Positions 25,977 through 64,000 of a DNA stretch of 64,000 nucleotides are shown here, in pieces (the first letter of the stretch is position 1; every line of letters begins with the position of its first letter). Source of the DNA: Macrostomum lignano (Eukaryota); the NCBI GenBank assembly GCA_002269645.1, contig NIVC01000349.1:558001-622000 (forward strand). Reading direction: 5' to 3'. The notes beneath the pieces are model-generated. The model was not told where the DNA came from and made no database searches. It saw nothing but the letters and a program-made list of their open reading frames with translations. The position numbers and the translations under genes were made by a program.

Positions 25977-28837
25977 ATGGCGCCTCAGCATCAATTGCTA
26001 TTTCTATCTGTTGCCCTACTGGCTCTGGTAACAATCTTTGGCAGCGTCAAACCAGTCTCCTCCTCCTCGACTGCAGAGCATCATTCTCAATGTCGAAGCC
26101 TGTGCGCCACCTGCCAGTCGTTAAAACCGGCAAGAATCAATCAGATATGCTCAGCGGGTCTGCTCACCGGCTGCAGCTGCCCCGAGAATGCGCTGAATTT
26201 GACGACAGCAAAGACGGCTCCTGACGAGGAGACAAAGATGAGAAATAACTGTCCCGGCACGAACAAAGATGCTATTGGATTCTGTACTTATGGTAAGCTT
26301 CCCTTGAGAATTAACTAACAATCTTCCTGGCCTTACACTACACTACACCAGTTTAAATAAGCCAGTTTTTTATTTAAAACGGCCCTTTTAGGGCCCGCTA
26401 GTGTGGCTTATACCGACTTATGAATAATTGAATATGAACCTTTGGTTTGGAATTGGATGTCAGGCGTCAGCATGAGTTATCGACAGTTACGAGTAACAAA
26501 GGAGACGCCCCTCTTTTCCGAAAAAATAGCATTGCTTCACATTTACACGAGTTACATACAATTTTTAAAACCTAAAACGGCCCTTTTAAGGGCCAACAGG
26601 TAACCTACGCCTTGCCTGTTTAAATAAACTGCCTCTCCTTTATCGCGTCTAGGCGTTTGACAGTGTAAGGCACATTTTTGCCAATATAAGACATCGCCTT
26701 TCGCCCCCCCCCGCAGGACAGCAAGTGGATTCCAGCGGGTGTCCAATCGGCATCTGCCGCCCTCCGCCCAGCTGCTCGGAATCTTCATCTATGGTGCTCT
26801 TCAAATCAGCCTGCCGCCTCTCCTGCCCGTCCGGATTCCAGACTGACTCAGCCGGGTGTCCCCTCTGTCGCTGCCGCTGTCCACCTCGAGATGAAGCTCG
26901 CCTTAGTTGCTCAAGGGCCTGCTCAGATTTGGGCCTGGCATCGGCAACAGCTAGGCTCGTCTCGCGGGGTTCTGCTGCAACTGGTAGCGATTCGAATACT
27001 GAAGGCTGTCCAGTGTGCGTCTGTCAGCAGGACCCGCCGGAGCCTTTGACCACGCCGCCTCCGCCGCCGCCGCCGTGTCTGCTCCGCTGTCCCAACAGTT
27101 GCGGATCTTACGGCTACGCTAGCGGCGAGTCTCGTGACGATCGGGGCTGCGTCAGGGACTGCTCATGCCGGTGCCCGCCTGCCAGACAGGTGAATGATGG
27201 ATGGATTGTCCGCCTGACTGTGCTTTCACAAGTTCCAGGGCGATTTGTACCTACTTTCTGGGCGATTTTTTCTCTTGTACTTTCAGTCAGGGCAATTTTT
27301 CTTGGGATGGGGAGAAGGGCGATTTTTCTAGGGATGGGGAGAAGGGCGATTTTTCTAGGGATGGGGAGAAGGGCGATTTTTTTGGGATGGGGAGAAGGGC
27401 GATTTTTTTGGGATGGGGGAGAAGGGCGATTTTTTTTAGGATGGGGGAGAAGGGCGATTTTTCTTGGGATGGGGGAGAAGGGCGATTTTTCTAGGGATGG
27501 GGGAGAAGGGCGATTTTTCTTGGGATGGGGGAGAAGGGTGATTTTTCTTGGGATGGGGGAGAAGGGCGATTTTTCTTGGGATGGGGGAGAAGGGCGATTT
27601 TTCTTGGGATGGGGAGAAGGGCGATTTTTTTGGGATGGGGGAGAAGGGCGATTTTTCTTGGGATGGGGGAGAAGGGCGATTTTTCTTGGGATGGGGGAGA
27701 AGGGCGATTTTTCTTGGGATGGGGGAGAAGGGCGATTTTTTTGGGATGGGGAGAAGGGCGATTTTTTTGGGATGGGGGAGAAGGGCGATTTTTCTTGGGA
27801 TGGGGGAGAAGGGCGATTTTTCTTTGTACTTTTAGGACAATTTTTTTGGGGGAAATGCGATTTCTCGTTAGGATTTTGGTTGGAAAAGCGATTTTTCTTG
27901 GTGAAAAAAGTGAGGATGATTTTTCCATATCTGATTAGTGATAAGGCGATTTTTCCTCACTTCCCACTTATTATTTCGCCTTGCTAATGATGAATTTATA
28001 ATCACGTTTGACTCGGAATAAAAGATTTCCATGCACGAAAATAATTGCAGCTGATTTATTTAAAGTGTAAGAATTTGGATTTGCAATTTTGCAATCATTG
28101 TTGTTCAGAGAGGTGTTAAAATCCCTCGCCCAAATCCTCAATTGAAGGCCTGCCCAGTTGGCGAGAGCTGCCTGCGCTGGGAGATTGACAGGTTCGGCTG
28201 CCAGCTGTGCTCAGCCTGCTCTGGCGGCTCCAGGTCTCACTCTGCAGCTCAGCAGCTGCCAGCCTCCCAGCCCTGCATCACTAAATCCAGCCTCCAGCAG
28301 CCCAACGCCATGGACCGCCTGTGCCCGTCCAATTGTCCCCGGCAGCAGTTCTCCATCAGCGAGGATTCGAACTCCGGCTGTCTGACCTGCTCATGCGCTG
28401 GCCAATCGCCAGCGAACAGGTGCTCGCAGACTGAGCCCAGCTGCTCAAACAGCTGCGGCCCGCACGGCCACCTGCGGGACTCGCTGGGCTGCCTGCTTCC
28501 CGGCTGCAATTGCAACTGCCCCGACCTCAACCAGTGCATCTCCAGCTGCGGTCAGGCTGGCAATTTCACTGTTGCTAAGGACGCCTACGGTTGCCATGCG
28601 TGTCACTGCTTGCAGCCAGCAGCAGCTAGCAGGTGTCCAGCCAAGCCGCGCTGCTCCCGAAGCTGCGGCCATCACGGATTTGAAATTGATGAGGCCACCG
28701 GGTGCCAGGTCGGCTGCGGATGCCGCTGCCCCAACCGGAGCTGCGGCTGCTTCTACGGCAGCAGGCAGGACGCCTTCGGCTGCGACACCTGCGAGTGCGT
28801 CACGGCCAGCGAGTACCTGCGGCTGCTGCCGTTCTGA
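25977..28837 (+). CDS. Secreted cysteine-rich protein with multiple antistasin-like repeats (~505 aa); exons 25977-26292, 26717-27189, 28109-28837
   Basis: Hydrophobic N-terminal signal-like segment (LLFLSVALLALVTIFG). Repeated C-x3-C-x2-G-x3-D-x2-GC-x2-C-x-C units (e.g. CRLSCPSGFQTDSAGCPLCRC, CFYGSRQDAFGCDTCEC). GT-AG introns are phase-compatible (1, 0). Confidence 0.8.
27290..27825. repeat. 27-28-bp G-rich minisatellite (GGGCGATTTTTCTTGGGATGGGGGAGAA) in intron 2 of the antistasin-like gene
   Basis: Tandem copies visible. Confidence 0.9.
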
Positions 28838-48973: not shown

Positions 48974-51082
48974 TCAGGACTCTTCTTCAGTGTCCGAGTC
49001 GTCATCATTTCTCCTGCACCTCTGCACCAGAATATAGATGAACTCAAGCAGCTCAAATGTGCTCACGACGCTGATGCCGAGCCAGAGTCCCAGAGTTCCT
49101 CCGACCTGCGGAATATCGAGGAAAAATTGAAAACTGGCACAGCAGCTCAGTGTTGCTAAGGGAACCAGGGTGGTGGGATTTGCTGGAGCCGATTTTAACT
49201 GGGCATGCAAGTGGAGCTGAGGGTGAGACAGTGGGGCTAAGGCGGGTCTGACCACCAGCCTTAAACACTGGAATATTGCAATAACCGGAATGCAGCTCTC
49301 ACCTCCGACAGGGCCTCAGTCCAGTGGTATCTGTACATCTCTTCGTAAACGTCCGCGGCAGGACTCTGCAAGCTGATGCTGACTGCTGCCAGGTTCTCCG
49401 CCAATTCGCTATGACGAACGCAAGGCGTTCCGAAATTTATATAATCTTCGTATGCCTGTAAGTTCTTTAATTAATAAACATTACGGCAGGTTCTGTCGTG
49501 AGATAGACGAAAATTAACTAGAATTTCCTGTCTGGATCTGTGATTTTTCTTATAGATATGATGCACCTTGCCATCCTCGGGCAGGAACTCGACTCCATGT
49601 GTGACTTGTGGCACCATCAGGTTCTCCCAGATCTCTTGAATGGCGCTGAACGGGGGCCACCCGCGGCTCTGCTGCCAAGGCCGTTGCTGAGTGAATTGGC
49701 ACCACATCCGGTGTTGGAACTCCTTCGCCAGCTCCTCGCTTTTCCTCTGTGCGTGCTCAAACCAGTGATCATGGCAGTCGATTCTCTTCAGCACAGCATC
49801 CGATGGGGTGATCCACTCCTGTGGTGGAGCGAAGTAGCAAAGGTCGCTCGTATTCACCGAGAACGGGAGCAGGTGCGAGTAGCAGCCGCAGTTGCTGTGC
49901 AGGATGCTCTGCTGTGCCTCGACTACGAAATCGGAGACGGACTTTGAGTAGGCCTTGGTGACCACGTTCAGCGAGGCGTTGGAGAAGTGCCTGACATAGT
50001 TGATGGTTTCGATTGGAGGCTCGGAGCAACTGCGGCTCGGCGTCGACTTGAGTCGGTTGTGGACCGGCCTGAGTTTGATGGAGGTGCTGGTGGCTGAGGC
50101 CACGTCCACGAACTCGGTCTCTGCGGTTTGGCATGGGTTTGGCATTGGCTGTGAGACTGGTTTGGCATGGGTTGTGCGTGGGCTATGAGACTATGTGACC
50201 TACGAGCTATGAAAACAATTTAATGCGACCTCAAAATTACGTACGACTCATCGGGTAGCTTTTCGCGTCGTGAATGAAAAGGCGCAATCCAGTAGACTGA
50301 GGCTGGTTGTTCTGCAGTAGCCGATTGGCAGATCTGCTTCTGAATAATATGCGGGACATGCAGGATGGAGGGTTATTTTTTTCCTGTTCGGTCTGAAAAA
50401 TATACCTAGAATAGTAGGAACTGTCTGTGTAGCCATCGGTGAAGAGCACCATGTCGAGCTCGGCTCCCCTGCCCCCAGAACCGCTGGACGACTGCCCCGG
50501 GTCCGGGTGGAACGTGTAGCAGCTCCAGAACCGGCTGGTCTGGACAAGCGAGAAGTTCTTGTGACTGCAGGGCTCGTTGTTGTAGCGGCAGCTCAGCAGC
50601 ATGGTCTTATCGAGGTGGGAGATGTCTCTGGTGTCGCCCGACACCCACATCACGTCCAGGACCTTCTTGCACACCTTCTCAATTCGGTTTTGGTAGCTTT
50701 CATCCGATTCCTGCGGGCGCTTCTTGGTGTCCTCTTGGAACCAGTTGTCGAAGTTGCCCCAGAAGGCTTTCAAGTAGTTGTAATATTGACTATTCACGGA
50801 TAAGCTAAGAGACATGGGCTTGAAATTGCAGATTGTGACGTCGGGAAACTGGGCTCGTTCGCTCCTCAGCTTCAGCCGCGACTCAACGGAGCGATCGGTG
50901 AATTTCTGCACCAATTTTGCCAGGTGGACGGTGCAGCCGATCAGGGCAGCTACGAACAGAAGCAGCCAGAAGAGCCGTCGAGCTGTGCCTCTGGACAGGA
51001 ATATGTGCAGCAAGCCGTGGGTTCTCGTGATGCCAGCCACCTCCTGGGCGGCACCGGTCACCGTGCGGAGTCGGGCTCGCAT
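48974..51082 (-). CDS. DEG/ENaC/ASIC-family (FaNaC-like) cation channel subunit (~558 aa); exons 50245-51082, 49567-50120, 49303-49455, 48974-49105
   Basis: Pre-TM1 THG motif, TM1 (LFWLLLFVAALIGCTVHL), FPDVTICN, CRYNNEPC, GLRLFIHD..YP, Cys-rich CGC, WPP, ENLAAVSI..YEE and TM2 ALSE|VGGTLGLWLGISVVSTFELLEF with a GxS filter. Exons sum to 1677 nt; the 49566 donor is weak. Confidence 0.88.
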
Positions 51083-51709
51083 TTTCCTCTTCAGTTTTTA
51101 AAGCAGCCTGCAGAACGGAATGCTGTAGATTTCTTAAGGCAGTTGCTAAGGAGTTATTTGCTAGTACTCAGAGGTTATCGAGCGCTCAAGCCAAACTCTT
51201 CCGCTCGGCAGTCCTGTTCCGCAGTGCGAGCTGCATCCTATCGGTGCCCTAGACTAAAGCATTCCCGCAACTGGGTGGCTTATTTGCTACTTGGCTTACA
51301 TGGATTTTGCTACGCAATTTAGGCGCAGCTAAAACAGTACTGTATAGACTGTAGAGTATGTAATATTCTAGCCAATACATGCACATAATTTTCTAGCAAA
51401 TCTGGTCCCTAGATCCCGGTCAGATCGCCAGTGCTTTAAGGTTAAAGGTTAGGGGTCTGGTGAAGTCGCCAAAATGAGTACCTGTGGTGCCAAAATGAGT
51501 GTGCTAACAACACCGACTCGCAAAATAATTTACAAGTAGAATTCTTGTCTTTGTCCCCCCCCCCCCTTCGACCATAAAAGCCAGGGCAACGCAACTGCAA
51601 CGTAAAAAAAAATTAAACGTCAGAGTAAAATTACATTAAGAGTTTAGGCGTCAATTTTGAAAAGCTTGTAGGTTAATTCACTTTACTGCGATGACTCTTT
51701 AGTCAATGA

Positions 51710-52280
51710 ATGTTCACGAGGGAGCTGCCAGTCACTGAAAGTTCACGAGGGAGCTGCCAGTCACTGAATGTTCACGAGGGAGCTGCCAGTCACTGAATGT
51801 TCACGAGGGAGCTGCCAGTCACTGAATGTTCACGAGGGAGCTGCCAGTCACTGAATGTTCACGAGGGAGCTGCCAGTCACTGAATGTTCACGAGGGAGCT
51901 GCCAGTCACTGAATGTTCACGAGGGAGCTGTCAGGCTGTCAGTCACTGAATGCTCATGAGGGAGCTGTCAGGCTGTCAGTCACTGAATGCTCATGAGGGA
52001 GCTGTCAGGCTGTCAGTCACTGAATGCTCATGAGGGAGCTGTCAGGCTGTCGGTCACTGAATGCTCATGAGGGAGCTGTCAGGCTGTTAGTCACTAAATG
52101 CTCATGAGGGAGCTGTCAGGCTGTCAGTCACTGAATGTTCATGAGGGAGCTGTCAGGCTGTCAGTCACTGAATGCTCATGAGGGAGCTGTCAGGCTGTCA
52201 GTCACTGAATGCTCATGAGGGAGCTGTCAGGCTGTCAGTCACTGAATGTTCATGAGGGAGCTGTCAGGCTTTCAGTCACT
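51710..52280. repeat. Composite minisatellite: 29-bp unit (51710-51930) switching to a 37-bp unit
   Basis: TGAATGTTCACGAGGGAGCTGCCAGTCAC becomes TGAATGCTCATGAGGGAGCTGTCAGGCTGTCAGTCAC by an 8-bp internal duplication. Confidence 0.9.
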
Positions 52281-52545: not shown

Positions 52546-54707
52546 TCATTGCAGTTTCATTCTATTGAGCTTGGCGTGAGTCCAGCTGTCTAACTGCTCT
52601 ACTGCTGTTTCCATGGCAACCAGACCCCCCAAGTCGGCCCCGTCTCGCAGCAACCTCGCCCTCGCCCACAGCCTCCGCTCCTCATCTTTCCTGCTGCGGT
52701 GAGCGCCGCTGTCGCTGCCGCTGCCGTTCGAAACTCGCCACCGCTTCTGCCTGACCCAGCCGATCTTCTCCTCGTCCTGCGTCTCCATGGCGACGCGTCT
52801 CTCTTTCTCGATCATCTCCATCTGCTGCAGGCTGAGCTCCACGTGCTCGCGGCAGTCGCTGTAGTGAGCCAGAGTGAGCAGCTCCTCCAAGTCCGGGTCT
52901 CCAAGCAGCTGCTCAATCCAATGATCGAATGCGATTGCAGGTGCGCGATTGCGGAGCAGCTCAGCTTGGAGACTCCAGCTCAGGCAGCGGAAGTTCACGT
53001 ACAGGTGAGAGGAGAGAGGCTGCGACAGTCTGGCTGTGAACAGAGTCTGCGTGAACTCGGGAAGGAATGGGAAGCGAGGCGGAGAGTCGCAGGGGAGGCA
53101 GAACCTCCACGCCCAGTCTGAGTCTTCTGGCAGTTTTATCTCTTTTTCTCCACTGCTTATACTCTCATCTCGAATATCCTGTGGCTTCAACCCTGACCCA
53201 ACTTGATGTCTCTGCAGCTCCATGGCGAATCTCTCAGCCTCCTCAGATTCTTCGAACTTCAAATGCGCCATGGCGGTCATGCACAGGGCGGCGCACTTGC
53301 ACCACTGCAGCTCATGCAGGAGACTGAGCTGCCTCATCAGGGTGTCTCTGTCGCTCGATTCCGACTGCAGCTCGCTCACACACTGGTGCACCACACTGTA
53401 CACGTCTGCAAACTTGCAAGTTTCCAGATAGTTACTTCTTTCCCTGATCTCCGTGACAGCAGGCGGCGCTGTCAGAGGCAGCAGAGTGAACGGGTGAAAG
53501 TAGAACTTCTCTGACTGCAGAGGTCTCACGAGTCTCCTCAGCTGCTCGACCACTCCGCCGATGTCGCTTCTCAGCTCACAAAGTCGGTCTCGAACCCTCG
53601 CCTTCGTGTTGTCAAAGTCGCCGCCGATTCCAGCGTTCTTGAAGTAGAGCGGAGCGTCGGGCATGAAGAAGTGCGGCATGCACTCATCGGGCGAAGTGTT
53701 TGAGTTGATGAAGCTCAGCATCATGTCGAGAGACTCCTTGAGCAGAGCGATCAGATATTGGGGTTGCCAAGCCTCATTCCGCCAACTATATGTGCCATGC
53801 TTTTCCAGCATGAAGAAAAGCATAGTCTTTGCATGATAGGTTTTGAGTCCAGGTGTGTCCAGAGTGAGCGGCAAGTGTCTCTTGAAGATGAACTTGATGA
53901 GTGTGAACAGCTGGCCCTGTACTGTGCTCATCTGTCTCATGATTTCTTTCTCTTGGAAGCTGAAGCTCACTCTGAGCTCGTTGGTCGAGCTCGGTCTGGT
54001 CGCTCTGACAAGGTGAACGTTCGTATCCTGATAGCTGAGAAGCCTCTCAACTCTGCTTTGACAGAAACTGCTGCAGCACTGGATCGCCTGGCAGATGTCT
54101 TGAGCAGGCCTCACACCGCATGCAGCCGCTGTCACGGTTGGTTGATTTCCTGAATTTTTTGTTTCAAATGCTTCACTTGATAATCTACTGCAATGAAATT
54201 AGCTGTAAAATTTTACATTTCTCTTCATTCTTGTCATCACAATGAACTACCAAAACATTGTCCGGAATTTATTAAACCCAGCCTCACTCACCTGCTCCCA
54301 CAGACACCTGTGCGTGGCCCTCCTTGACTTGCAGCCGAGTGGCATATCTGCAGGAGTCCTTCCATCTTTCGCAGCCACCTTCTAGGTGGAACTCTTGCCC
54401 AGCAACCAGCACAGTCCAGTCAATGTCCGAGTCTGCAGCTGTCCTGCCGTTCACTTGCACCAGACTGTTGGCCCAGCCCTCTGCGTAGCTGCCCGTTATC
54501 TGCCTGCCATCCTGTGTGAGGACTCGAGCGACTCCTTCAAGCCAGTCAGCCAGTCTCTGCTGACACTCCGCTCTCTCCCTGGTGAATCCCGCCTCGCTAA
54601 GCAGTCGATGAAGCTCTTCGCTCAGGCGCCTGTCTTGCTGGGAGTCGTCTGAGAGCTTGGAATGCTCTTCGCTGAGTTGCCTCTCATTCCGAGTGTCGTC
54701 TTTGACC
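52546..54707 (-). CDS. Mab-21/cGAS-like nucleotidyltransferase domain (cGLR); exons 54292-54707 and 52546-54149
   Basis: The unannotated exon 54292-54707 reads ..ITGSYAEGWANSLVQVNGRTAADSDIDWTVLV.. (GS..DxD). It splices in phase 1 (GTGAGT donor at 54291, TTCAG acceptor at 54150) to ..AQDICQAIQCC..NVHLVRA..ELRVSFSFQEKEIM..LIKFIFK..LKTYHAKTMLFFMLE..ECMPHFF, the canonical Mab-21 core. Confidence 0.88.
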
Positions 54708-57700
54708 CTGACAAATACATATAAAGAAGATTACGCAATTCTCAATTGGCAGTCAACTACGAGTATTAACTCTAACGTATAAAGTTTCTAAGGTTTCCAT
54801 AAAGTTTCTGCTACAATTGGCAAATGAGTAAGACTGATAAGATGCTAAGTGTAGTGAGTCGCTATTTAGTTAGGCGCCGCACTAGTCAGCTGGTTTCCTC
54901 GCCCTCGCCCCAGGCTTCTGTCTGCCGCTGGGCAGTTGTCTGTCCCTTCTCGCCTGTCCTCTGGCCTGTCCCTTGCCCGTTTGCCTGTCTGTCTGTTTGT
55001 CCTCGTTTGCCCCCTTTTGTTTCGTGTTCTCGTTTTGCAGTGCCCAGACAGCTTGGTCTGGCCTGCCTCTGTTTCGTCTCTGTTAGGCACCTCCAAATCT
55101 GGAGTGCCGTTCTGTTTTCCGATCCCAAGGTCACGAGTGCCTTCACTTGTGGGCCCTTTTCCCCTTGTCGTGTGAGCCAGTCACATGACAAGCCTCTTCT
55201 GTCTTATTAGTCCAAAGTACAATGATTTCCTCATTGTGCACTGGGCTCGTGTTTATGGGGACATCACGTGCGTCAGGACCCCCTGTCTCCTCTTCTGAGG
55301 CGGAACCCGCTCGCTTGTTGCTAAAAATAGCAACAGCGTCATCTATGACGCGCATCGATTGCACCATTTTGTGATATGGTGCAATCGATGCTCCCTATAA
55401 ATGCAGTCCCTCTCATGGCTTGGCTCAGACAAGCGCGTCCCCTTTTCTGCCTCACCGTTTCACCTGTCTCTCAGTTTCAAGCCAAGCTCGTGTGCCAAGT
55501 TTGAGCCTAAGTTTGAACTCCAAGACTCCCGACTTTGCGAGTGCCTGCTTCTAATTGTTCCTGCTATCTATTAGCGGGCCGGCTCAGATCGCCCGAAGCT
55601 AGCACCATCGCTCTAGCCCCGAACTAGCCCGGCAGGGACTGCTGATTGTGGACGCATCTGCTCGAGAACTGCTAGTTATTGCTAGTTATTTGCTTCTACG
55701 AGCTCAGCACCTCACCGAAGGCTGCGACTCTACGAAGCTGGTGGCAGCACTACCTACGCTACGAGAACTAGTTTCTAAGAAACCGCCAGCTAGACGCCTC
55801 CGCCAGGAGCTAGAAGATCTGCCAGCCCTTCCGAGACAGCCCGAGGAAGCCAGCAGACACGACATTGGTGGCAGCGGTCTAGTCAACAACCACAGGCAAG
55901 AGCACTTACTTCATTGGTGGCAGCGGTGGGATTCTAAGACCTACCATGCAGGCCATCTCCAGACCAACTAAAGTGCAAATACTTCAGAAGCAACTGCCTA
56001 TTTTCATTTTAGGACTTTTAGCTCCGATAATAACATTATAATCCTCACACTGAATTCTGTTCAAGAAGTCGGAGCACCTGCCGCTGCTCGAATCGCTGTG
56101 CCACCTGCGCACACGTCAGACCCCGACCGTCTCGATGACTCGCATCCGCTCCTCTGTCCATCAGAGCCTTGGCTGCTCGCACGTGACCGGCTTCGCACGC
56201 TCGTGACAGAGCAGTCCGACCCTGACTGTCTTTAGCACGCACTGACGCACCGAGATCGATGAGTTTCTCAATGAGCTCGTGATGACCTTCATCAGCTGCC
56301 AGCATGAGAGCAGTGGCTCCAGTGCTGTCTGGCAGATCGACATGCTGTGTGCTGACTCGCTCATCATTGATCAGTGTGACAGCAAGAGCCACGTGTCTTT
56401 GAGAGATGGAGAGACGAAGCAGCTGTGTGATGAGAGCTGGCTGCATTCGAGAGAGGGTGTCGGTGAGAACAGAGTTCCTGCCTTCGATGGCCATTGCTGC
56501 AGTGAAGCTGAGGATGGTGCTGGATTGGAAGAGCCAGTCGGGCTCGAGGCCGAGGGATGCAACGACATCTTCATGAAGACGAGAGCAAGCCGCGACTGCA
56601 TATTGGAAACGGAGATTCGCTTTGGGATCCCGACTTGAGATACACGAGATGAAGAACTTCGCGACTTCTAGCTGACCCTCTTCAGCAGCATATTTCGCTG
56701 CCCCAATGCAGCACTGATCTCTGTTTGTTTGGTCAGCGACTGACTGAACCAGAAACTTCACAATTTCCCACTGACCATTGCTTGCAGCAGATTTCACTGC
56801 CTCAATGCAGCACTGATCTCTGTTTGTTTGGTCAGCGACTGTCTGCACCAGAACCTTCACAATTTCCCACTGACCATTGCTTGCAGCAGATTTCACTGCC
56901 TCAATGCAGCACTGATCTCTGTTTGTTTGGTCAGCGACTGTCTGCACCAGAACCTTCACAATTTCCCACTGACCCTCGCTTGCAGCAGATCCTGCTGCTT
57001 CAATGCAGCACTGATCTCTGTTTGTTTGATTAGCGACTGACTGAACCAGAAACTTTACCACTTCCCACCGACCCTTTCTTGCAGCAGATTTCGCTGCATC
57101 AGTGCAGCACTGATCTCTTTTTGTTTCGTCAGCGACTGTCTGCATCAGAAATTTCATAACACCGAAGTGACCTTTGCTTGAAGCAGATTTTGCTGCCTCA
57201 ATGCAGCAATGGTCTCTGCTTGTTTGGTCAACGACTGTCTGCACCAGAAACTTCAGTACTTCCCACTGACCCTCACTTGCAGCAGATACTGCTGCCTCAA
57301 TGCAGCACTGATCTCTGTTTGTTTGGTCAGCGACTGTCTGAACCAGAAACTTTACCACCTCCAACTGACCATTGACTGCAGCAGATTTCGCTGCCTCCTT
57401 GCAACCGTGATCTCTCAATTTTTGGTCAGCGACTGTATGCACCAGGACCTTCACCTCCTTCAAAACACCGTTGATTGCTGCAGATTTTGCCGCTTCAATG
57501 CAGCACTGGTCTCTCAGGCTTTGGTCAGAAATGGTCTGGACCAGAAACTTCACCACTTTCCACTGACTGTCTCGTGCAGCAGGCCTCACTGCCTCCATGC
57601 AGCACCGATCTCTCACATTTCTGTCTGTCACAGTCTGCACAAGAAATTTCACCACTTCCCACTGATGCTCATCTGCAGCAATCAGCGCTGCCTGTAAGCA

Positions 57701-59053
57701 GCAGCTATCTTTGAAATTTAAGTCGCATATCAAATTAACAGCATAGTCAAGAATCTTTAAATTTCCAAATCTTGCTGCCGACTTAGCAGCCTTTGTGCAG
57801 CATTTGACCCTCATGGTTTGATCGCATGCCACCTTCAGCAGGAACTCCACAGCCTCCCACTGGCGTTCTGTTGCAGCGGCATTCACAGCTTGTACGTAGC
57901 AAGTCTCTTTTAGCTCCGGGTGAGTAATTTCCCGAGACAATAGTTTCAACAATTCCAGATGCCCGAACTTGGCAGCGGACTTTGCCCCTTCAGAACAGCA
58001 CTGATCGCGCAGACGTTCATCAGAAATCTGCTCGAGCAGCAAAATTATTATCTTAGAATCGCCACATTCTGCAACTCCGTTTACGAAAACCGCGCAGCAA
58101 TGAAATTTCAACGTAGAATCAACCACGATCTGGTTAAAAAGCTTTAGAACTTCATAATTTCCTACTGTTGAAGCGGCAGAGACTGCTTTCTTACAGGAAA
58201 TCTTCTTTAGATCGTCTTTCATTATACAGTGCAAAAACAGATTCAGGGTGCTCCACTCGCATTTTACTGCGACATCTTCTATGATTTCAAAGAAGCACTG
58301 ATCTCTTGCAAAGCCGTCTGTAACGCTGGTTACTAAAAGTTTCACGACTTCCCATTCGGTTTTCTTAGCAGCAAATTTTGCCACCTCCAGGCAGCACCGA
58401 TCCCTGTCCGGGATGTCAGAGATCTGTTGAATCAGAAACTTCATCATCTCTATCAGGTTCATACTCGGCGTGTCTCTGAACTCAACCATGCAGAAGTCTG
58501 CAAACATGCTCTCCTCGGTCTGCAGGTTCACGACTGTCAGCGAAGTCTCATCCGATCGCCAGTGCTGCAGAGTGGACGTCATCAAGAGTTGAACAATTTC
58601 CCACTGGTGATATGTGGCCGCAGATTTCGCTGTCTCAATGCAGAATTCGTCAATAAAGTCTCTATGTACTTTTAGATAGAGATAGCGCACGACTGACACC
58701 CGACCAAATTGTGCAGCACATTTAGCAGCCTCTAAGCATCGTCCTGCGTCCGTTAGTTGGGATCCGTCTGATTGTATAATAGAGTCGAGCAGTTTCAAAC
58801 GACCAATCTTAGCGACAGTCAGCACTGATTCTTTATCAAACACTTGGCAAGCAAAAAATTCAATATTCTTCATTCGAGTGAACGCTAAAGCTGACGTCAA
58901 TCGATTTTTGACAGAGCTTTTGTTAAACACCACATAAATAACAAACTGAGTGGCGGGATGCCTTCTTCCAGAAGACTTTTGTATTTGACCAGAATTCCAA
59001 TTTTTAGTCCAGCGTCTGCGACCTAAGACGTAGGCCCTGGTTAGATCTGGCAT
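52546..59053 (-). CDS. Predicted ankyrin-repeat plus cGAS-like receptor fusion gene (~1674 aa); exons 56049-59053, 54292-54707, 52546-54149
   Basis: The ankyrin ORF stop lies inside a donor-like GT|GTGAGG at 56048. A phase-2 join to the TTTGTCAG|G acceptor at 54708 gives ..EQNSV|VKDD.. in frame. Exons total 5025 nt = 1675 codons. Confidence 0.65.
54850..55933 (+). mobile_element. LTR-like segment plus tRNA-Leu primer-binding site, inserted in the ANK-cGLR intron
   Basis: Begins TGTAGTGAG at 54850, has TATAAA at 55396, and ends ..TTCA-T-TGGTGGCAGCGGTGGGAT. Positions 55915-55932 are the complement of the eukaryotic tRNA-Leu 3' end including CCA. A second 13-nt PBS copy lies at 55866-55878. CTAAG flanks both sides (54845-54849, 55934-55938). 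Confidence 0.55.
56045..59053 (-). CDS. Single 3-kb exon encoding ~20 divergent 33-aa ankyrin-like repeats plus 2-3 canonical ankyrin repeats
   Basis: Repeat consensus DQCCIEAAKSAAxxGQWEVVKFLVQTVADQTNR (33 aa, 99 bp). Canonical GATALMLAADEGHHELIEKLIDLGASVRAKD and GRTALSRACEAGHVRAAKALMDRGAD lie at the C-terminal end. Confidence 0.88.
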   Translation of the reverse strand: MPDLTRAYVLGRRRWTKNWNSGQIQKSSGRRHPATQFVIYVVFNKSSVKNRLTSALAFTRMKNIEFFACQVFDKESVLTVAKIGRLKLLDSIIQSDGSQLTDAGRCLEAAKCAAQFGRVSVVRYLYLKVHRDFIDEFCIETAKSAATYHQWEIVQLLMTSTLQHWRSDETSLTVVNLQTEESMFADFCMVEFRDTPSMNLIEMMKFLIQQISDIPDRDRCCLEVAKFAAKKTEWEVVKLLVTSVTDGFARDQCFFEIIEDVAVKCEWSTLNLFLHCIMKDDLKKISCKKAVSAASTVGNYEVLKLFNQIVVDSTLKFHCCAVFVNGVAECGDSKIIILLLEQISDERLRDQCCSEGAKSAAKFGHLELLKLLSREITHPELKETCYVQAVNAAATERQWEAVEFLLKVACDQTMRVKCCTKAAKSAARFGNLKILDYAVNLICDLNFKDSCCLQAALIAADEHQWEVVKFLVQTVTDRNVRDRCCMEAVRPAARDSQWKVVKFLVQTISDQSLRDQCCIEAAKSAAINGVLKEVKVLVHTVADQKLRDHGCKEAAKSAAVNGQLEVVKFLVQTVADQTNRDQCCIEAAVSAASEGQWEVLKFLVQTVVDQTSRDHCCIEAAKSASSKGHFGVMKFLMQTVADETKRDQCCTDAAKSAARKGRWEVVKFLVQSVANQTNRDQCCIEAAGSAASEGQWEIVKVLVQTVADQTNRDQCCIEAVKSAASNGQWEIVKVLVQTVADQTNRDQCCIEAVKSAASNGQWEIVKFLVQSVADQTNRDQCCIGAAKYAAEEGQLEVAKFFISCISSRDPKANLRFQYAVAACSRLHEDVVASLGLEPDWLFQSSTILSFTAAMAIEGRNSVLTDTLSRMQPALITQLLRLSISQRHVALAVTLINDERVSTQHVDLPDSTGATALMLAADEGHHELIEKLIDLGASVRAKDSQGRTALSRACEAGHVRAAKALMDRGADASHRDGRGLTCAQVAQRFEQRQVLRLLEQNSV

Positions 59054-60193: not shown

Positions 60194-60789
60194 AAACACT
60201 GGGTATTCGACTGTTTTAATTGACTCGTTAAACGTTTTTTGTGCCACAAAAGTTTCAAAATTGGTAGAATAGGCTTCTGCTACTAATAAAGTTAGTTACT
60301 TTTCCATGAATGTCTATGGAAATAATAAAGAAAAGAAATTCGTATTTCAACTTTACCTGTTGTGTTCTAAGGCAGCAAGAATTATATGTATCTGGGTAAA
60401 ACAGCTTTTAGCTCGAATGCATGTATTTTTTATTTTTCTAATTTATCCAAGCTGTGAATATAAACAGACTTTATGAATCTCTCTCTCTCTCTCTCACTCT
60501 CTACAGCTCTATCTTATCTAATATTGTCTTATATTTTCAGTACTGTGCAGAAAGACACGTGTACATGTAACAGGGTACTAATTTCCTGCATCGCCGTACT
60601 CCACCCCAAAGCCTTGCAGGGATCCGCAATAGCTCTAGCGCATTCAAGGTGTGTCAATGACTCGGCCATGTGATGACCCCGAAAAAATCAAGACTGAAGA
60701 TTAAAGGAAAACTTGAAAATGCTAAATTCAGTTTACTTGTGGAGCGAAAATTTGGAGAGAAAATTGGTGGCGCACCAGACCCCAGCTGG

Positions 60790-62424
60790 TGCATCAATGC
60801 TCGGTGGATCAAGTACAAGCTAAATGATGACGCTAACGCACTGTCCAGAGCGCCGGTGGAGGAGCCTAAAGCGAGCGATCAGATCCTGGAATTCGACAAC
60901 AGGGAGCAGGCTATCAGCTCAGTGCACGCTCTGTTGCAGTCGGAGAAAGAAATCTCCGAAGCAGCAAACCGTGATTCAGAATATCGGCTTCTCAAGAAGA
61001 TAATCCTAGATGGTTTTCCAAACTGCAAGGCGAACCTCCAAGAGAATATCCGTGCGTACTGGCACCTACGGCAACAACTCTGCGTCGAAGACGACCTCAT
61101 CCTGGCTGGAAGACGGCTACTGATCCCTAGGAAGCTAAGGAGAAGCGTCCTCGAAAATCTCCTGAAGATGCAGCAGGGGATTCCACAAAATGAAGGAGCA
61201 AGCAAGGCAAAGCATTTTCTGGCCTGGCCTGATCAACGACATCGAGCAGATCGCTAAGACGTGCAAACCATGCCAAGAAAATCTTCCTAGCCTGGCGAAG
61301 GAACCCATGGTCGTTCCAGAGCCACCGGAACGAGTCTTCCAAGAGATCTACGCGGATCTATTTGAATATGCAGGGAAGAATTTCCTTGTCATCGTGGATG
61401 GCCTATCCGGTTGGGCAGCTCTCAATTACCTTGGCGATGACACACCCGCAACCAAAGTCGTCAGTGCTATCCGACAGAGATTCGTCGAGAAATCGGTCCC
61501 CGACATTTTCTGGTCAGACGCCGGTCCACAATTCAACGCAAAAAATTTCAAGGATTTCCTACTAGCACGCTGGAACGTCGAACACCGAGTATCGTCTCCA
61601 CATTATCCACAGAGCAACGAACGCGCCGAAGCTGGGGTGAAAGAAATGAAGAAGATCGTCAGAGGGTCTTGGAACCATCAGACTGGCACGCTGGACTGGG
61701 AGAAACTGTCAAAAGGCCTCTTAGTCTATCTCAACACTCCAAGATACGACGGCAAGTCCCCAGCTGAAACAGTGTTCGGCCACCCAATTCGTGACACGAT
61801 TCCGGCACACAGAAGAGCGTTCGCACCTGAATGGCAAAAATCTGCAGCTGAGATCGAGGAGAAGCAGGCTAGAGTCAAGGCGACTACGGAGAAATACTAC
61901 AACCAAGACGCTCAGCCCCTGCCGGACATCAAAGTGCATCACAGAGTGGTGGTTCAGGACTGTCACACCGGATGATGGGACAAGTACGGCGTGATCGTGG
62001 AAGCCGGACGGAACCGAGATTTCATGATTCGACTGGCGAGTGGGAGATGTCTACGGCGGAACCGCAAGTTCATCAGGAAGCGGATCCCAGTCAGCCCAAT
62101 CGAGGCCAAGAAGACCGCCGCGGACGGTGCTACCGAGCAAGGCATGCCTGGAGCATCCGGAGGGTCGGCCGAGCCAAGGAGGACCCGATTCGGCCGAGAG
62201 ACTAAGAAACCTCAGATGCTACAGGTTGACCTATAGGAGGAAAAACTATGATAGTTGAACTTTGAAAGGGGAGATGGTGTATCCCCAGCCTTAGTTGTGT
62301 GGCTTTGGTCATAGACAATTATACGCGTGACTGTAACCGTATGCAAATATACGTCGTACTGAAGACGGCCACCGCGACTGAGCGGATTATTAAGCTAAGC
62401 CGATTATCTATTAGAGATACAACA
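60790..62424 (+). mobile_element. 5'-truncated, frameshifted Ty3/Gypsy LTR retrotransposon (RNase H end, integrase, PPT, 3' LTR)
   Basis: ARWIK..NDDANALSRAP; zinc-finger region ARQSIFWPGL..CKPC; integrase D(ADLF)-D(WSDAGPQF)-E(SNERAE); frameshift near 61180; polypurine tract GAAAGGGGAGATGG at 62264-62277. Confidence 0.88.
62278..62424 (+). repeat. Short 3' LTR of the Gypsy element (TGTATC..GATACAACA)
   Basis: TG directly after the PPT, CA end, and terminal inverted TGTATC/GATACA. Confidence 0.65.
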
Positions 62425-62619
62425 CCAGCCTGGTTGGTAAATAGTTTGGCTTACGTCTGACTTTGACCTTTTTCCTTACTGCTCTCTGATTGGCTGAGCT
62501 AGATTAGGCCTGCCCCCTAGACTCCTGACTTTAACGACCCCTCCTTACTGCTTTCTCATTGGCTGAGCCAGATTGGGCCTGCCCCCTCGGCTGAGTTTAA
62601 TCTGTCTTGCGTTCATTTG

Positions 62620-63355
62620 CGTACATCGAGCGATCGACAGGCTGGTCGAGCTGGCATCGAGCGTCGGTCTGATCGTCAACACGCTAAAGACCGAGGTGCT
62701 GACTGTGCCGGCCGACATCCCAGCGGACCTGACGTGCCGCGGCGCAGACGGGCAGATGACCAAGCTCGCATGCTGCCAGCGGTTCACCTACCTCGGCGGT
62801 CTGGTGCCCTACGTGGAGGAAGACCTCCGGCGGCGCAGAGGACTTGCCCCGGGCAGCCTTCCGTTTGATCCGGGCCGTCCTCCAGTCCGAAGTGCTACCC
62901 GACCGCCAGAGGGCTCGGCTGTGGCAGGCGGTGGTCAAAACCGACCTGCTCTACAACGCCGAGACGTGGACGCTGACGGCTACGCTAGAGCGGCAGCTGG
63001 ACTCGGTGCACTCAGGGCTGCTCCGCGCGGTCTTTTAAGCTGACGAGATCGAGCGTCGGGACCGAGGCCCTGTACGATCGGGCCAAGCTGCAGCGCCCGT
63101 TCATCATCCTGCGCCGGCAGCGACTTCAACTGGCGGGCCACGTGATCAAGGGCTACTGCCCCCAACCTGTTCAGGACGTCCTGCTGTTCACCTTGCAGGG
63201 CCCGTTCAGGCGGGGTCAGGCCCAAACCCGTGATGGATACGTGGACTGCCTGCTGTGCCACGCTGGGGCACCCGACACTCCAACGGAGCGGACTTCGTCC
63301 GCTCTCAGGCTCTGCGGCTCTGTAACCGTGACCTTTGCATGCGGAGCTGCGTAGT
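62620..63355 (+). mobile_element. RTE-like non-LTR retrotransposon 3' fragment (end of RT and downstream domain), frameshifted
   Basis: GLIVNTLKTEVL, FTYLGG, LLYNAETWTLT and QRLQLAGHVIK are typical of LINE RT C-terminal regions. Confidence 0.75.
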
Positions 63356-63569
63356 TAAATGCTCGTTGTTCCCATATGCTCCACTTTTTTATTACACAGT
63401 TTATGTTTACGATACAATTTATGTTACACAGCTTAAACAAATACGAGCTCTTACTACCAAAACAGACTAGCCGTTCTACTTTTTTTACTATTTTAATGGC
63501 GAGTGACATACATGTACTTGTTTTAATTTTTCGAAGTTATTCGTACATGTATGCATGACAGTGGATATG

Positions 63570-63935
63570 AAACAACAACAACAACAACAACAGAGTACGC
63601 TGCCAGTTCACAAAAGCAGCGTCAGATGGCGCGCTTCAAAGCTTGGGCGCGAACAAAAGCCGCACCGCCGGCAGAGTCCGGGGCGCCGGCGTCAGCCAGC
63701 AGACAGTCGACGTAGCGCCGAGTCTTCGCCTGTCCCCGCCGGTAGGGTGCCTGCAACGAAAGTAGCAGCACCTCCTGCACCGGCTCCGGACAGTAGGCCT
63801 CGGCGCGGATGACGTGGCCTGCCAGCTGGAGTCGCCGACGGCGCAGCAGATCGCTAGGACGGGCCAGGCCGGCGCGATGATAGAGCGCCGTGTTGGTGAC
63901 TCGCTCGATGCCGATCTTGAAGGCGGCGCGGATAT
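63570..63935 (-). mobile_element. Second RTE-like LINE 3' end, opposite orientation, with (TTG)n tail
   Basis: LYHRAGLARPSDLLRRRRLQLAGHVIRAEAYCPEPVQEVLLLSLQAPYRRG is homologous to the + copy. An (AAC)n tract at 63570-63591 forms the tail. Confidence 0.78.
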
Positions 63936-64000
63936 GAAACATAAACATCTTACTGACCTGTTCATCCTGTCCTCTGTCAGTAAAGTGGCTGAAGATTAAA

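Follow-up and report, generated by a model that had tools for sequence, protein, structure and literature searches.

A Macrostomum lignano ankyrin-repeat gene encodes a cGAS-like receptor with a predicted complete catalytic site

Analysis of a 64,000-nt stretch of the Macrostomum lignano genome (assembly GCA_002269645.1, contig NIVC01000349.1, positions 558,001 to 622,000 of the forward strand; hereafter the window, numbered from its first letter) revealed a three-exon gene on the minus strand, which runs from about 58873 to 52546 within a coding region of 52.5-59.1 kb and comprises about 1614 codons from a methionine at 58873. The encoded protein consists of an N-terminal ankyrin array, a cGAS-like receptor (cGLR) nucleotidyltransferase core and a conserved C-terminal domain of about 225 amino acids. 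The initial annotation of this DNA had claimed that a cGAS-type catalytic triad is intact at 54090-54500 and that the product is an active nucleotidyltransferase; the exons on which it relied proved to be the middle of the larger ankyrin-cGLR-C-terminal domain gene described here, whose family has already been published as cGLRs. Residues are numbered in the spliced product, counted from the first full codon of exon 2 (54707-54292), and all gene features lie on the minus strand unless stated otherwise.

Exon 1 (56049..58873), the N-terminal ankyrin-repeat region, was delimited from Pfam matches, splice phase and paralogue N-termini. Its frame is open from 59122 to 56049 and holds about 1000 residues of ankyrin repeats, matching Ank_2 (3e-45), Ank_4 (3e-42) and Ank (2e-34) in Pfam. 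The most likely start codon is the ATG at 58873 (MKNIEFF...), because similarity to paralogue N-termini begins shortly after it, about 15-45 residues past this methionine; the alternatives are an ATG at 59053 or a start in an upstream exon. A tblastn search for an upstream start exon like the 'MGQNQS...' of the paralogues P0001 and P0002 matched internal ankyrin repeats only. At the exon 1 donor (56049; ...AAT TCA GT/gtgagg) two codon bases are left over, and exon 2 supplies the third with its first base, across intron 1 (54708..56048; 1341 nt, gtgagg...cag), assigned from its splice sites and phase. Exon 2 (54292..54707), assigned from translation and splice sites, extends from the acceptor cag/G at 54707 to the donor CAG/gtgagt at 54292 and encodes the linker, the first spine helices and the N-terminal half of the cGLR core, with a product that includes ...QITGSYAEGWANSLVQVNGRTAADSDIDWTVLV... 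and ends in ...VSVGAG. Intron 2 (54150..54291; 142 nt, gtgagt...ttcag, phase 1) separates it from exon 3 (52546..54149), an open frame that begins ttcag/GAAATC at 54149 and closes with a stop at 52548-52546. Exon 3 encodes the rest of the core and the Mab-21 C-terminal helical lobe (NQPTV...GVRPAQDICQAIQCC...VHLVRATRPSSTNELRVSFSFQEKEIM...GLKTYHAKT...), the C-terminal domain and a charged tail; its C-terminus, ...THAKLNRMKLQ, matches those of the paralogues, which also share the position of the stop.

When joined, exons 2 and 3 form a frame open for 672 codons to the shared stop, and the three exons together form one frame of 1697 codons from 59122 with a single terminal stop. The genomic locus of the paralogue P0001 (L001) has a matching three-exon layout, in the order ankyrin exon, short intron near ...RLL, exon ending ...VGAG, long intron and last exon; the equivalent of intron 1 is about 183 nt long there, versus 1341 nt here. 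No further copy of the cGLR domain was found by tblastn in the 64-kb window, which therefore holds one copy only.

The predicted catalytic residues are divided between exons 2 and 3. GSYAEG (aa 72-77, 54493-54476) and DSDID (aa 92-96, 54433-54419) are in frame in exon 2, for which the initial annotation had given exact bounds, and QDICQAI (aa 155-161, 54102-54082) is in frame in exon 3, followed by HLV (aa 184-186, 54015-54007) and RVSFSFQE (aa 198-205, 53950..53973). These motifs were all found where they had been placed, except that QDICQAI runs 8 bases past the low end of the 54090-54500 range, to 54082. By hhalign, the I70-T71-G72-S73 element (54488..54499, with G72-S73 at 54493-54488) aligns with G212-S213 of human cGAS, and the predicted metal-binding pair D94-I95-D96 (54419..54427, with D94 at 54427-54425 and D96 at 54421-54419) aligns with E225-F226-D227; the predicted third catalytic acidic residue, D156 (54097..54099), falls on D319. 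With the methionine at 58873 as residue 1, D94, D96 and D156 are D1036, D1038 and D1098. HLV lies opposite 'YLV' of cGAS. RVSFSFQEKE aligns to R376-LSFSHIEKE, which puts R198, S200 and E205 on R376, S378 and E383 (hhalign), three positions that we take to be substrate-contacting in cGAS. Further downstream, the Mab-21 C-terminal helical lobe (HhH/H2TH-like, 53647..53865) contains TYHAKT, and its Y243 and K246 align with Y436 and K439.

These placements were obtained by profile comparison. A profile of 83 family sequences aligned to human cGAS (a sequence identical to PDB 5v8o_A) with a probability of 74.7% in global and 87.1% in local mode; 20 shuffled-cGAS controls reached at most 1.1%, so the match exceeds what chance gives. 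The same profile matched canonical Mab-21 proteins, defined as those matching both PF03281 and PF20266, at 99.96% locally (E 4.5e-39) and at 100% globally (E 8e-52, 298 columns). The local alignment omitted the GS/DxD region and the global mode was needed to cover it; there, GS is placed on GS, SDID on SD.D and the distal Asp on a conserved Asp. Canonical Mab-21 proteins align in turn with human cGAS at 99.1% (E 4.5e-19), and here too these columns lie opposite G212-S213, E225, D227 and D319. Three alignment routes thus assign G72-S73, D94, D96 and D156 to the positions of cGAS G212-S213, E225, D227 and D319. The earlier proposals that QDICQAI is the strand of the third acidic residue and that the triad is intact were borne out, in that the third position in the profile alignment to human cGAS is acidic (D156) and not a non-acidic residue, and D156 lies on the adjacent strand in the structural model described below. 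D92-x-D94 was considered as the catalytic pair and rejected: D94/D96 is the pair indicated by the alignments as well as by the [DE]h[DE]h pattern, and D92 (54433-54431), an extra acidic residue, is much less conserved.

The spacer between GS and DxD is 20 residues long, versus 11 in human cGAS, because of a family-specific 9-residue insertion, W[AG]NSL.QVNG. In or beside another insert, between the DxD and distal-Asp strands, five residues (H107, C112, C119, C163 and C164; 54388-54350 and 54078-54073) are near-invariant in the family. They could form a structural metal site separate from the cGAS zinc thumb.

Conservation was assessed in 83 divergent family representatives with a mean pairwise identity of 41%, down to 20%. 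The G and the S of GS are each kept in 82 of them, and an acidic residue is found at D94 in 82, at D96 in 79 and at D156 in 77; R198 is present in 79, S200 in 76, E205 in 78, Y243 in 79 and K246 in 81. At 92-99%, the catalytic columns are among the most conserved of the whole set. In five of the six representatives lacking a complete triad, the distal Asp has been lost jointly with a DxD residue (Fisher p = 2e-7, uncorrected for shared ancestry). Because 77/83 representatives retain all three acidic residues and the exceptions are mostly such joint losses, the triad is judged intact and appears to be under selection.

Two paralogues fused to a caspase domain (Peptidase_C14), P0027 and P0054, which are M. 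lignano proteins encoded outside the window, both have degenerate triads, with D-to-N at the second DxD position and Ser or Thr in place of the distal Asp. Triad-intact members such as the window gene carry no effector domain. We infer that an attached effector may have made a diffusible signal needless in the caspase-fused paralogues; a number of the long fused gene models may, though, be chimeras of the annotation.

For the core, AlphaFold2 gave a model with a predicted local distance difference test score (pLDDT) of 81.8 and a predicted template modelling score (pTM) of 0.86. All of its top 50 Foldseek matches in the PDB were cGAS, with a probability of 1.00, template modelling (TM) scores of 0.46-0.59 and about 340-400 aligned columns; a longer model that included the C-terminal domain also retrieved MAB21L1 and Sp-cGLR1 (8gjy). 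According to the model, the core has the two-lobed cGAS fold. GS is positioned at the turn between the first strand and a helix, D94-I-D96 opens the long strand beta2 (E69-83, model numbering), and D156 is on the adjacent strand (E129-138, model numbering). In sequence searches, Pfam PF20266 (Mab-21_C) was matched at 25.2 bits (cut-off 24.1), and single-sequence and profile HMMER searches against PDB sequences gave matches via the C-terminal lobe only, the profile search finding Sp-cGLR1 8gjy at E 3e-4 and cGAS at about 1e-3. As such searches see only the C-terminal lobe, the catalytic half was tested by structure, by profiles, by the chain through Mab-21 proteins and by conservation.

For the family-specific C-terminal domain (aa ~386-610, 52735..53409), the prediction is mainly helices plus one small three-stranded sheet. 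The domain is conserved throughout the family, at identities as low as about 24%, and its motifs include DWAWRFCLPC and HLYVNFRCLSWSLQAELL. No Pfam family matched it, TPR included, and a Foldseek search of the core plus C-terminal domain model against the PDB gave matches to the core only. The pTM of that model, 0.82, suggests that the C-terminal domain packs against the core.

The window gene belongs to a large family. A database search gave 45 homologues, of which 44 are named Macrostomum lignano and one is on a Joint Genome Institute (JGI) contig; the best are 84-86% identical, and most have ankyrin repeats ahead of the same core. An identical protein was not found in a database of 5.8 billion sequences. 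An exhaustive profile search returned 1047 relatives at E <1e-3, with at least 82 clusters (50% identity) at E <1e-30. All seven strong members sampled were from M. lignano, and the weaker relatives sampled were canonical Mab-21 proteins, often with C-terminal TPRs, from an annelid and a bivalve. A prokaryotic or viral origin of the gene was rejected in view of its GT-AG introns, its flatworm homologues, and the retrotransposon fragments and eukaryotic genes around it.

Li et al. (2023, PMC9980059) define cGLRs by the motif h[QT]GS-X8-20-[DE]h[DE]h-X50-90-h[DE]h, by homology in both lobes and by AlphaFold2 similarity to known enzymes. In the window protein, I70-T71-G72-S73 supplies h[QT]GS; the following spacer of 20 residues equals the upper limit and leads to D94-I-D96-W (E225-F-D227-V in cGAS); and D156 comes after a spacer of 57 residues. 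Homology extends over both lobes, as judged from PF20266 and from the alignment of both lobes to PF03281+PF20266 proteins at 100%, and structural homology is evident from the top 50 cGAS matches and the retrieval of Sp-cGLR1. In the catalogue of Li et al., M. lignano members of the family appear as cGLRs whose active sites are predicted to be complete; occasional ankyrin- or TPR-fused cGLRs and lineage-specific expansions in invertebrates are described there as well (PMC9980059). Their 140 cloned enzymes include five M. lignano proteins (PMC9980059). Among the family members listed, PAA68676.1 (BOX15_Mlig016402g1, #93) is the top match P0001, 84% identical to the window protein, and PAA93208.1 (#92) is of the same subfamily. 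The window gene is a paralogue or allele new to this already described M. lignano family; it opens no new category, because Li et al. catalogued the family, noted ankyrin fusions and screened the 84%-identical paralogue. The family and its annotation as having a complete active site are already published, and activity is not among the published results.

The window protein shares with #92 and #93 the motifs (I/M)TGSYAEGWANSL...DSDIDW, RPAQD(I/T)C, HLVRATRP and RVSFSFQEK. The 84% identity to P0001 extends over 97% of the exon 2+3 product, and the two have the same C-terminal domain, three-exon layout and N-terminal ankyrin region. It differs from #92 and #93 in being 14-16% divergent in amino acids and in having a much longer ankyrin array with a ten-copy, 33-aa tandem repeat. 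The closest relatives outside Macrostomum are bivalve and annelid Mab-21/TPR proteins (for example Sinanodonta KAL3855470.1 and Lamellibrachia KAI0227343.1; 100%, E 8e-52). They too have GS..EG...SD.D and the distal Asp, and in them the core is likewise fused to a repeat-type interaction module; however, this module is a C-terminal TPR and not an N-terminal ankyrin array, and the W[AG]NSL.QVNG insertion is lacking.

The cGAS of human, mouse and pig (for example PDB 5v8o, 6ct9 and 4k8v) resembles the window protein in its caged two-lobed fold (Foldseek probability 1.00, TM ~0.5-0.59) and in GS, E/D-x-D and the distal D, with equivalents of R376, S378, E383, Y436 and K439 also aligned. The identity is only 12-16%, however, and the window protein has, in addition, an ankyrin array and a C-terminal domain. 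Opposite cGAS 390-404, the segment of the zinc thumb (H390/C396/C397/C404), it has an alignment gap, and the isoelectric point (pI) of its core is 7.7, versus 9.1 for the human cGAS core. Because of this gap and this difference in pI, we take the window protein, on sequence grounds, not to be a cGAS orthologue. Sp-cGLR1 of Stylophora pistillata (PDB 8gjy) is the best PDB match by sequence profile (E 3e-4, C-terminal lobe only) and is also a structural match, but it is a stand-alone enzyme with a double-stranded RNA (dsRNA) ligand, for which the product 3'3'-cUA has been shown (PMC9980059).

MAB21L1 (PDB 5eog and 5eom) shares the Mab-21 fold, with a sequence match in the C-terminal lobe (E 0.007) and about 205-209 structural columns at a root-mean-square deviation of about 4.1 Å. 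It differs in its developmental role, and the window protein has the full GS and three-acid set. MAB21L1 has been proposed to act as a scaffold. In the legend of Figure 1 of Li et al., Mab21L1/2/3 form a group without a predicted functional active site (PMC9980059). Because its catalytic site is predicted to be complete, the window gene can be annotated as an ankyrin-repeat cGAS-like receptor and not as a Mab21-type pseudo-enzyme.

The ankyrin region ahead of the core is about 940 residues long in the window protein, versus about 350 in P0001. A 99-bp unit is repeated 9.9 times in tandem within exon 1 (56685..57665; in Tandem Repeats Finder, 80% matches at period 99 and a score of 1094). Every unit encodes 33 aa that form an ankyrin-like repeat with the pattern VKFLVQTVADQTNRDQCCIEAAKSAAsxGQWE, and the repeated peptides are visible by tblastn. 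Adjacent copies of the unit are near-identical, which suggests that the array expanded recently within the gene. Intron 1 holds an inverted repeat (tgcaccat...atggtgca, ~55366-55389) followed by TATAAA at ~55397-55402. An inserted element could reside in this intron; alternatively, the intron could carry an internal promoter that drives an isoform without ankyrin repeats, comparable to the 659-aa paralogue P0003.

Taken together, the window protein very likely belongs to the cGLR family and has a complete catalytic site, and on balance it would also be a working enzyme. As for the mechanism as a whole, we favour a synthase that is gated by a ligand and makes a nucleotide second messenger, with a probability of roughly 0.6. 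In such a mechanism a pair of divalent metal ions would be bound by D94, D96 and D156, which would catalyse the condensation of two nucleoside triphosphates into a cyclic or a 2'-5'/3'-5'-linked dinucleotide. The ankyrin array, the C-terminal domain or both may supply recognition of a ligand or partner, which would act through the long GS-to-DxD loop with its 9-residue insertion. The ligand is probably other than a canonical long double-stranded nucleic acid, because the core is near-neutral and lacks a basic surface, nothing in it corresponds to the zinc thumb, and for close paralogues no activity with double-stranded DNA or poly I:C is reported.

Several observations weigh against a ligand-gated synthase. 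The loop before the D156 strand is modelled with pLDDT <50 (model residues 117-126 in the core model and 113-130 in the core plus C-terminal domain model), and PF03281, the nucleotidyltransferase half, gave no match to the exon 2+3 product at E up to 1. The strict h[DE]h element fails at position -1 only, reading Q155-D156-I157 with a hydrophobic residue at +1; the accepted entries #92 and #93 of Li et al. read Q-D-T (PMC9980059), so their curation tolerated a Gln at -1. The 15 active enzymes named in the accessible part of that study come from insects, anemones, molluscs, hydras and corals, and none is from a flatworm (PMC9980059). Li et al. further state that most platyhelminths lack cGLR signalling and have only Mab21-like proteins; the platyhelminths in their species table all have zero cGLR and zero STING, and Macrostomum is not among them (PMC9980059). 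Literature searches found no STING or cGLR data specific to Macrostomum, and no protein search for STING was made. The structural part of the initial annotation is thus supported by the alignments and the model; that the enzyme is active can still only be inferred, because no flatworm is among the 15 active enzymes though the 84%-identical PAA68676.1 was cloned for the screen.

The strongest rival explanation is that the core makes no nucleotide signal and serves as a pseudo-enzyme or scaffold, an adaptor between the ankyrin array and downstream partners. Apart from the Gln in place of a hydrophobic residue before D156, the missing direct match to PF03281, the near-neutral pI and the absence of a zinc-thumb equivalent, it can draw on the five M. 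lignano members screened by Li et al., none of which is among the 15 active enzymes in the part of the study accessible (PMC9980059). The paralogues P0027, P0054 and P0030 persist with a dead triad, so the fold is of use without catalysis. Non-canonical signalling has also been reported for a crustacean (shrimp) Mab21, which, in the accessible part of that report, activates IKK-epsilon outside the nucleotide-signalling paradigm (PMC12928593). A scaffold, however, would have no reason to keep GS, D94, D96, D156, R198, S200, E205, Y243 and K246 at 92-99% at overall identities of 20-41%, and the joint loss of DxD and distal Asp suggests a single working site. Inactivity in vitro, moreover, is common among orphan cGLRs: Li et al. 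note that many seem inactive, probably since their ligands are unknown (PMC9980059). We therefore regard a pure scaffold as unlikely.

Less probable still is that the core is active but performs a different transferase chemistry, such as the synthesis of OAS-like linear 2'-5' oligonucleotides or of a cyclic trinucleotide, or the transfer of a nucleoside monophosphate to a protein or an RNA end. The motif GS..EG...SD[IL]D resembles generic Pol-beta-type transferases more than vertebrate cGAS, the canonical Mab-21 relative P0153 also matches Pfam NTP_transf_2 and an MTPAP-like palm domain, and both the 9-residue insertion in the GS-to-DxD loop and the diversity of cGLR products described by Li et al. 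(PMC9980059) would be compatible with such an activity. The top structural matches, on the other hand, are all cGAS, MAB21L1 or Sp-cGLR1, with no poly(A) or terminal uridylyl transferases, and the equivalents of cGAS R376, S378, E383 and Y436 are conserved; nor can a particular product be predicted from sequence alone. A silent or decaying recent duplicate, whose intact triad would reflect its young age only, is very improbable: the closest database paralogues are indeed 84-86% identical within a very large family, intron 1 exceeds its counterpart in a paralogue by about 1.2 kb and may hold an inserted element, and the flanks contain retrotransposon fragments and satellites, but the 1697-codon frame over three exons has intact splice sites and a conserved stop position, and at 14-16% protein divergence an unconstrained copy would be expected to carry stops or frameshifts.

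The neighbourhood of the gene is of mixed content. Its downstream neighbour on the same strand has an exon (50240-51097, perhaps to 49474, minus strand) for part of an amiloride-sensitive sodium channel, which matches Pfam ASC at E 1.3e-30. Just upstream of the gene, within 60661-64000, an integrase fragment of an LTR retrotransposon (rve and H2C2 zinc-binding domains) was found at 61166-61972; for the other open frames up to 64000 Pfam gave no match, and these may likewise derive from mobile elements. A Cys-rich open frame on the plus strand (26653-27984) matches the antistasin family at E 1e-8, which suggests a secreted protease-inhibitor-like gene. Micro- and minisatellite arrays occupy 2.3-4.5, 6.4-9.5, 12-17, 20-23.6 and 27.1-27.9 kb as well as 52000-52280, and give rise to long spurious open frames; a 37-bp unit is repeated 7.6 times just 3' of the gene. 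The composition swings strongly along the window, with a GC skew down to -0.78 at 8-10 kb.

At the level of the family, interest lies in a set of orphan cGLRs, with a conserved C-terminal domain and an expanding ankyrin array, in a group where most lineages have lost the pathway. A more speculative reading, which we put forward only tentatively, is that the combination of ankyrin array, cGLR core and novel C-terminal domain constitutes a receptor repertoire built within Macrostomum, an NLR-like diversification of cGLRs. The fast-evolving ankyrin array, and not the back face of the enzyme, would then be the variable ligand-recognition module, whose ligands may be proteins or other molecules that are not nucleic acids; triad-intact members would signal by a diffusible nucleotide, and the caspase-fused ones by direct proteolysis without catalysis. 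If true, cGLRs would have diversified in a phylum from which, according to other reports, their signalling is largely gone. As a flatworm, M. lignano is tractable in the laboratory, and its ligand, product and receptor are open to experiment; the caspase-fused, triad-less paralogues offer a natural experiment on what the enzyme activity serves.

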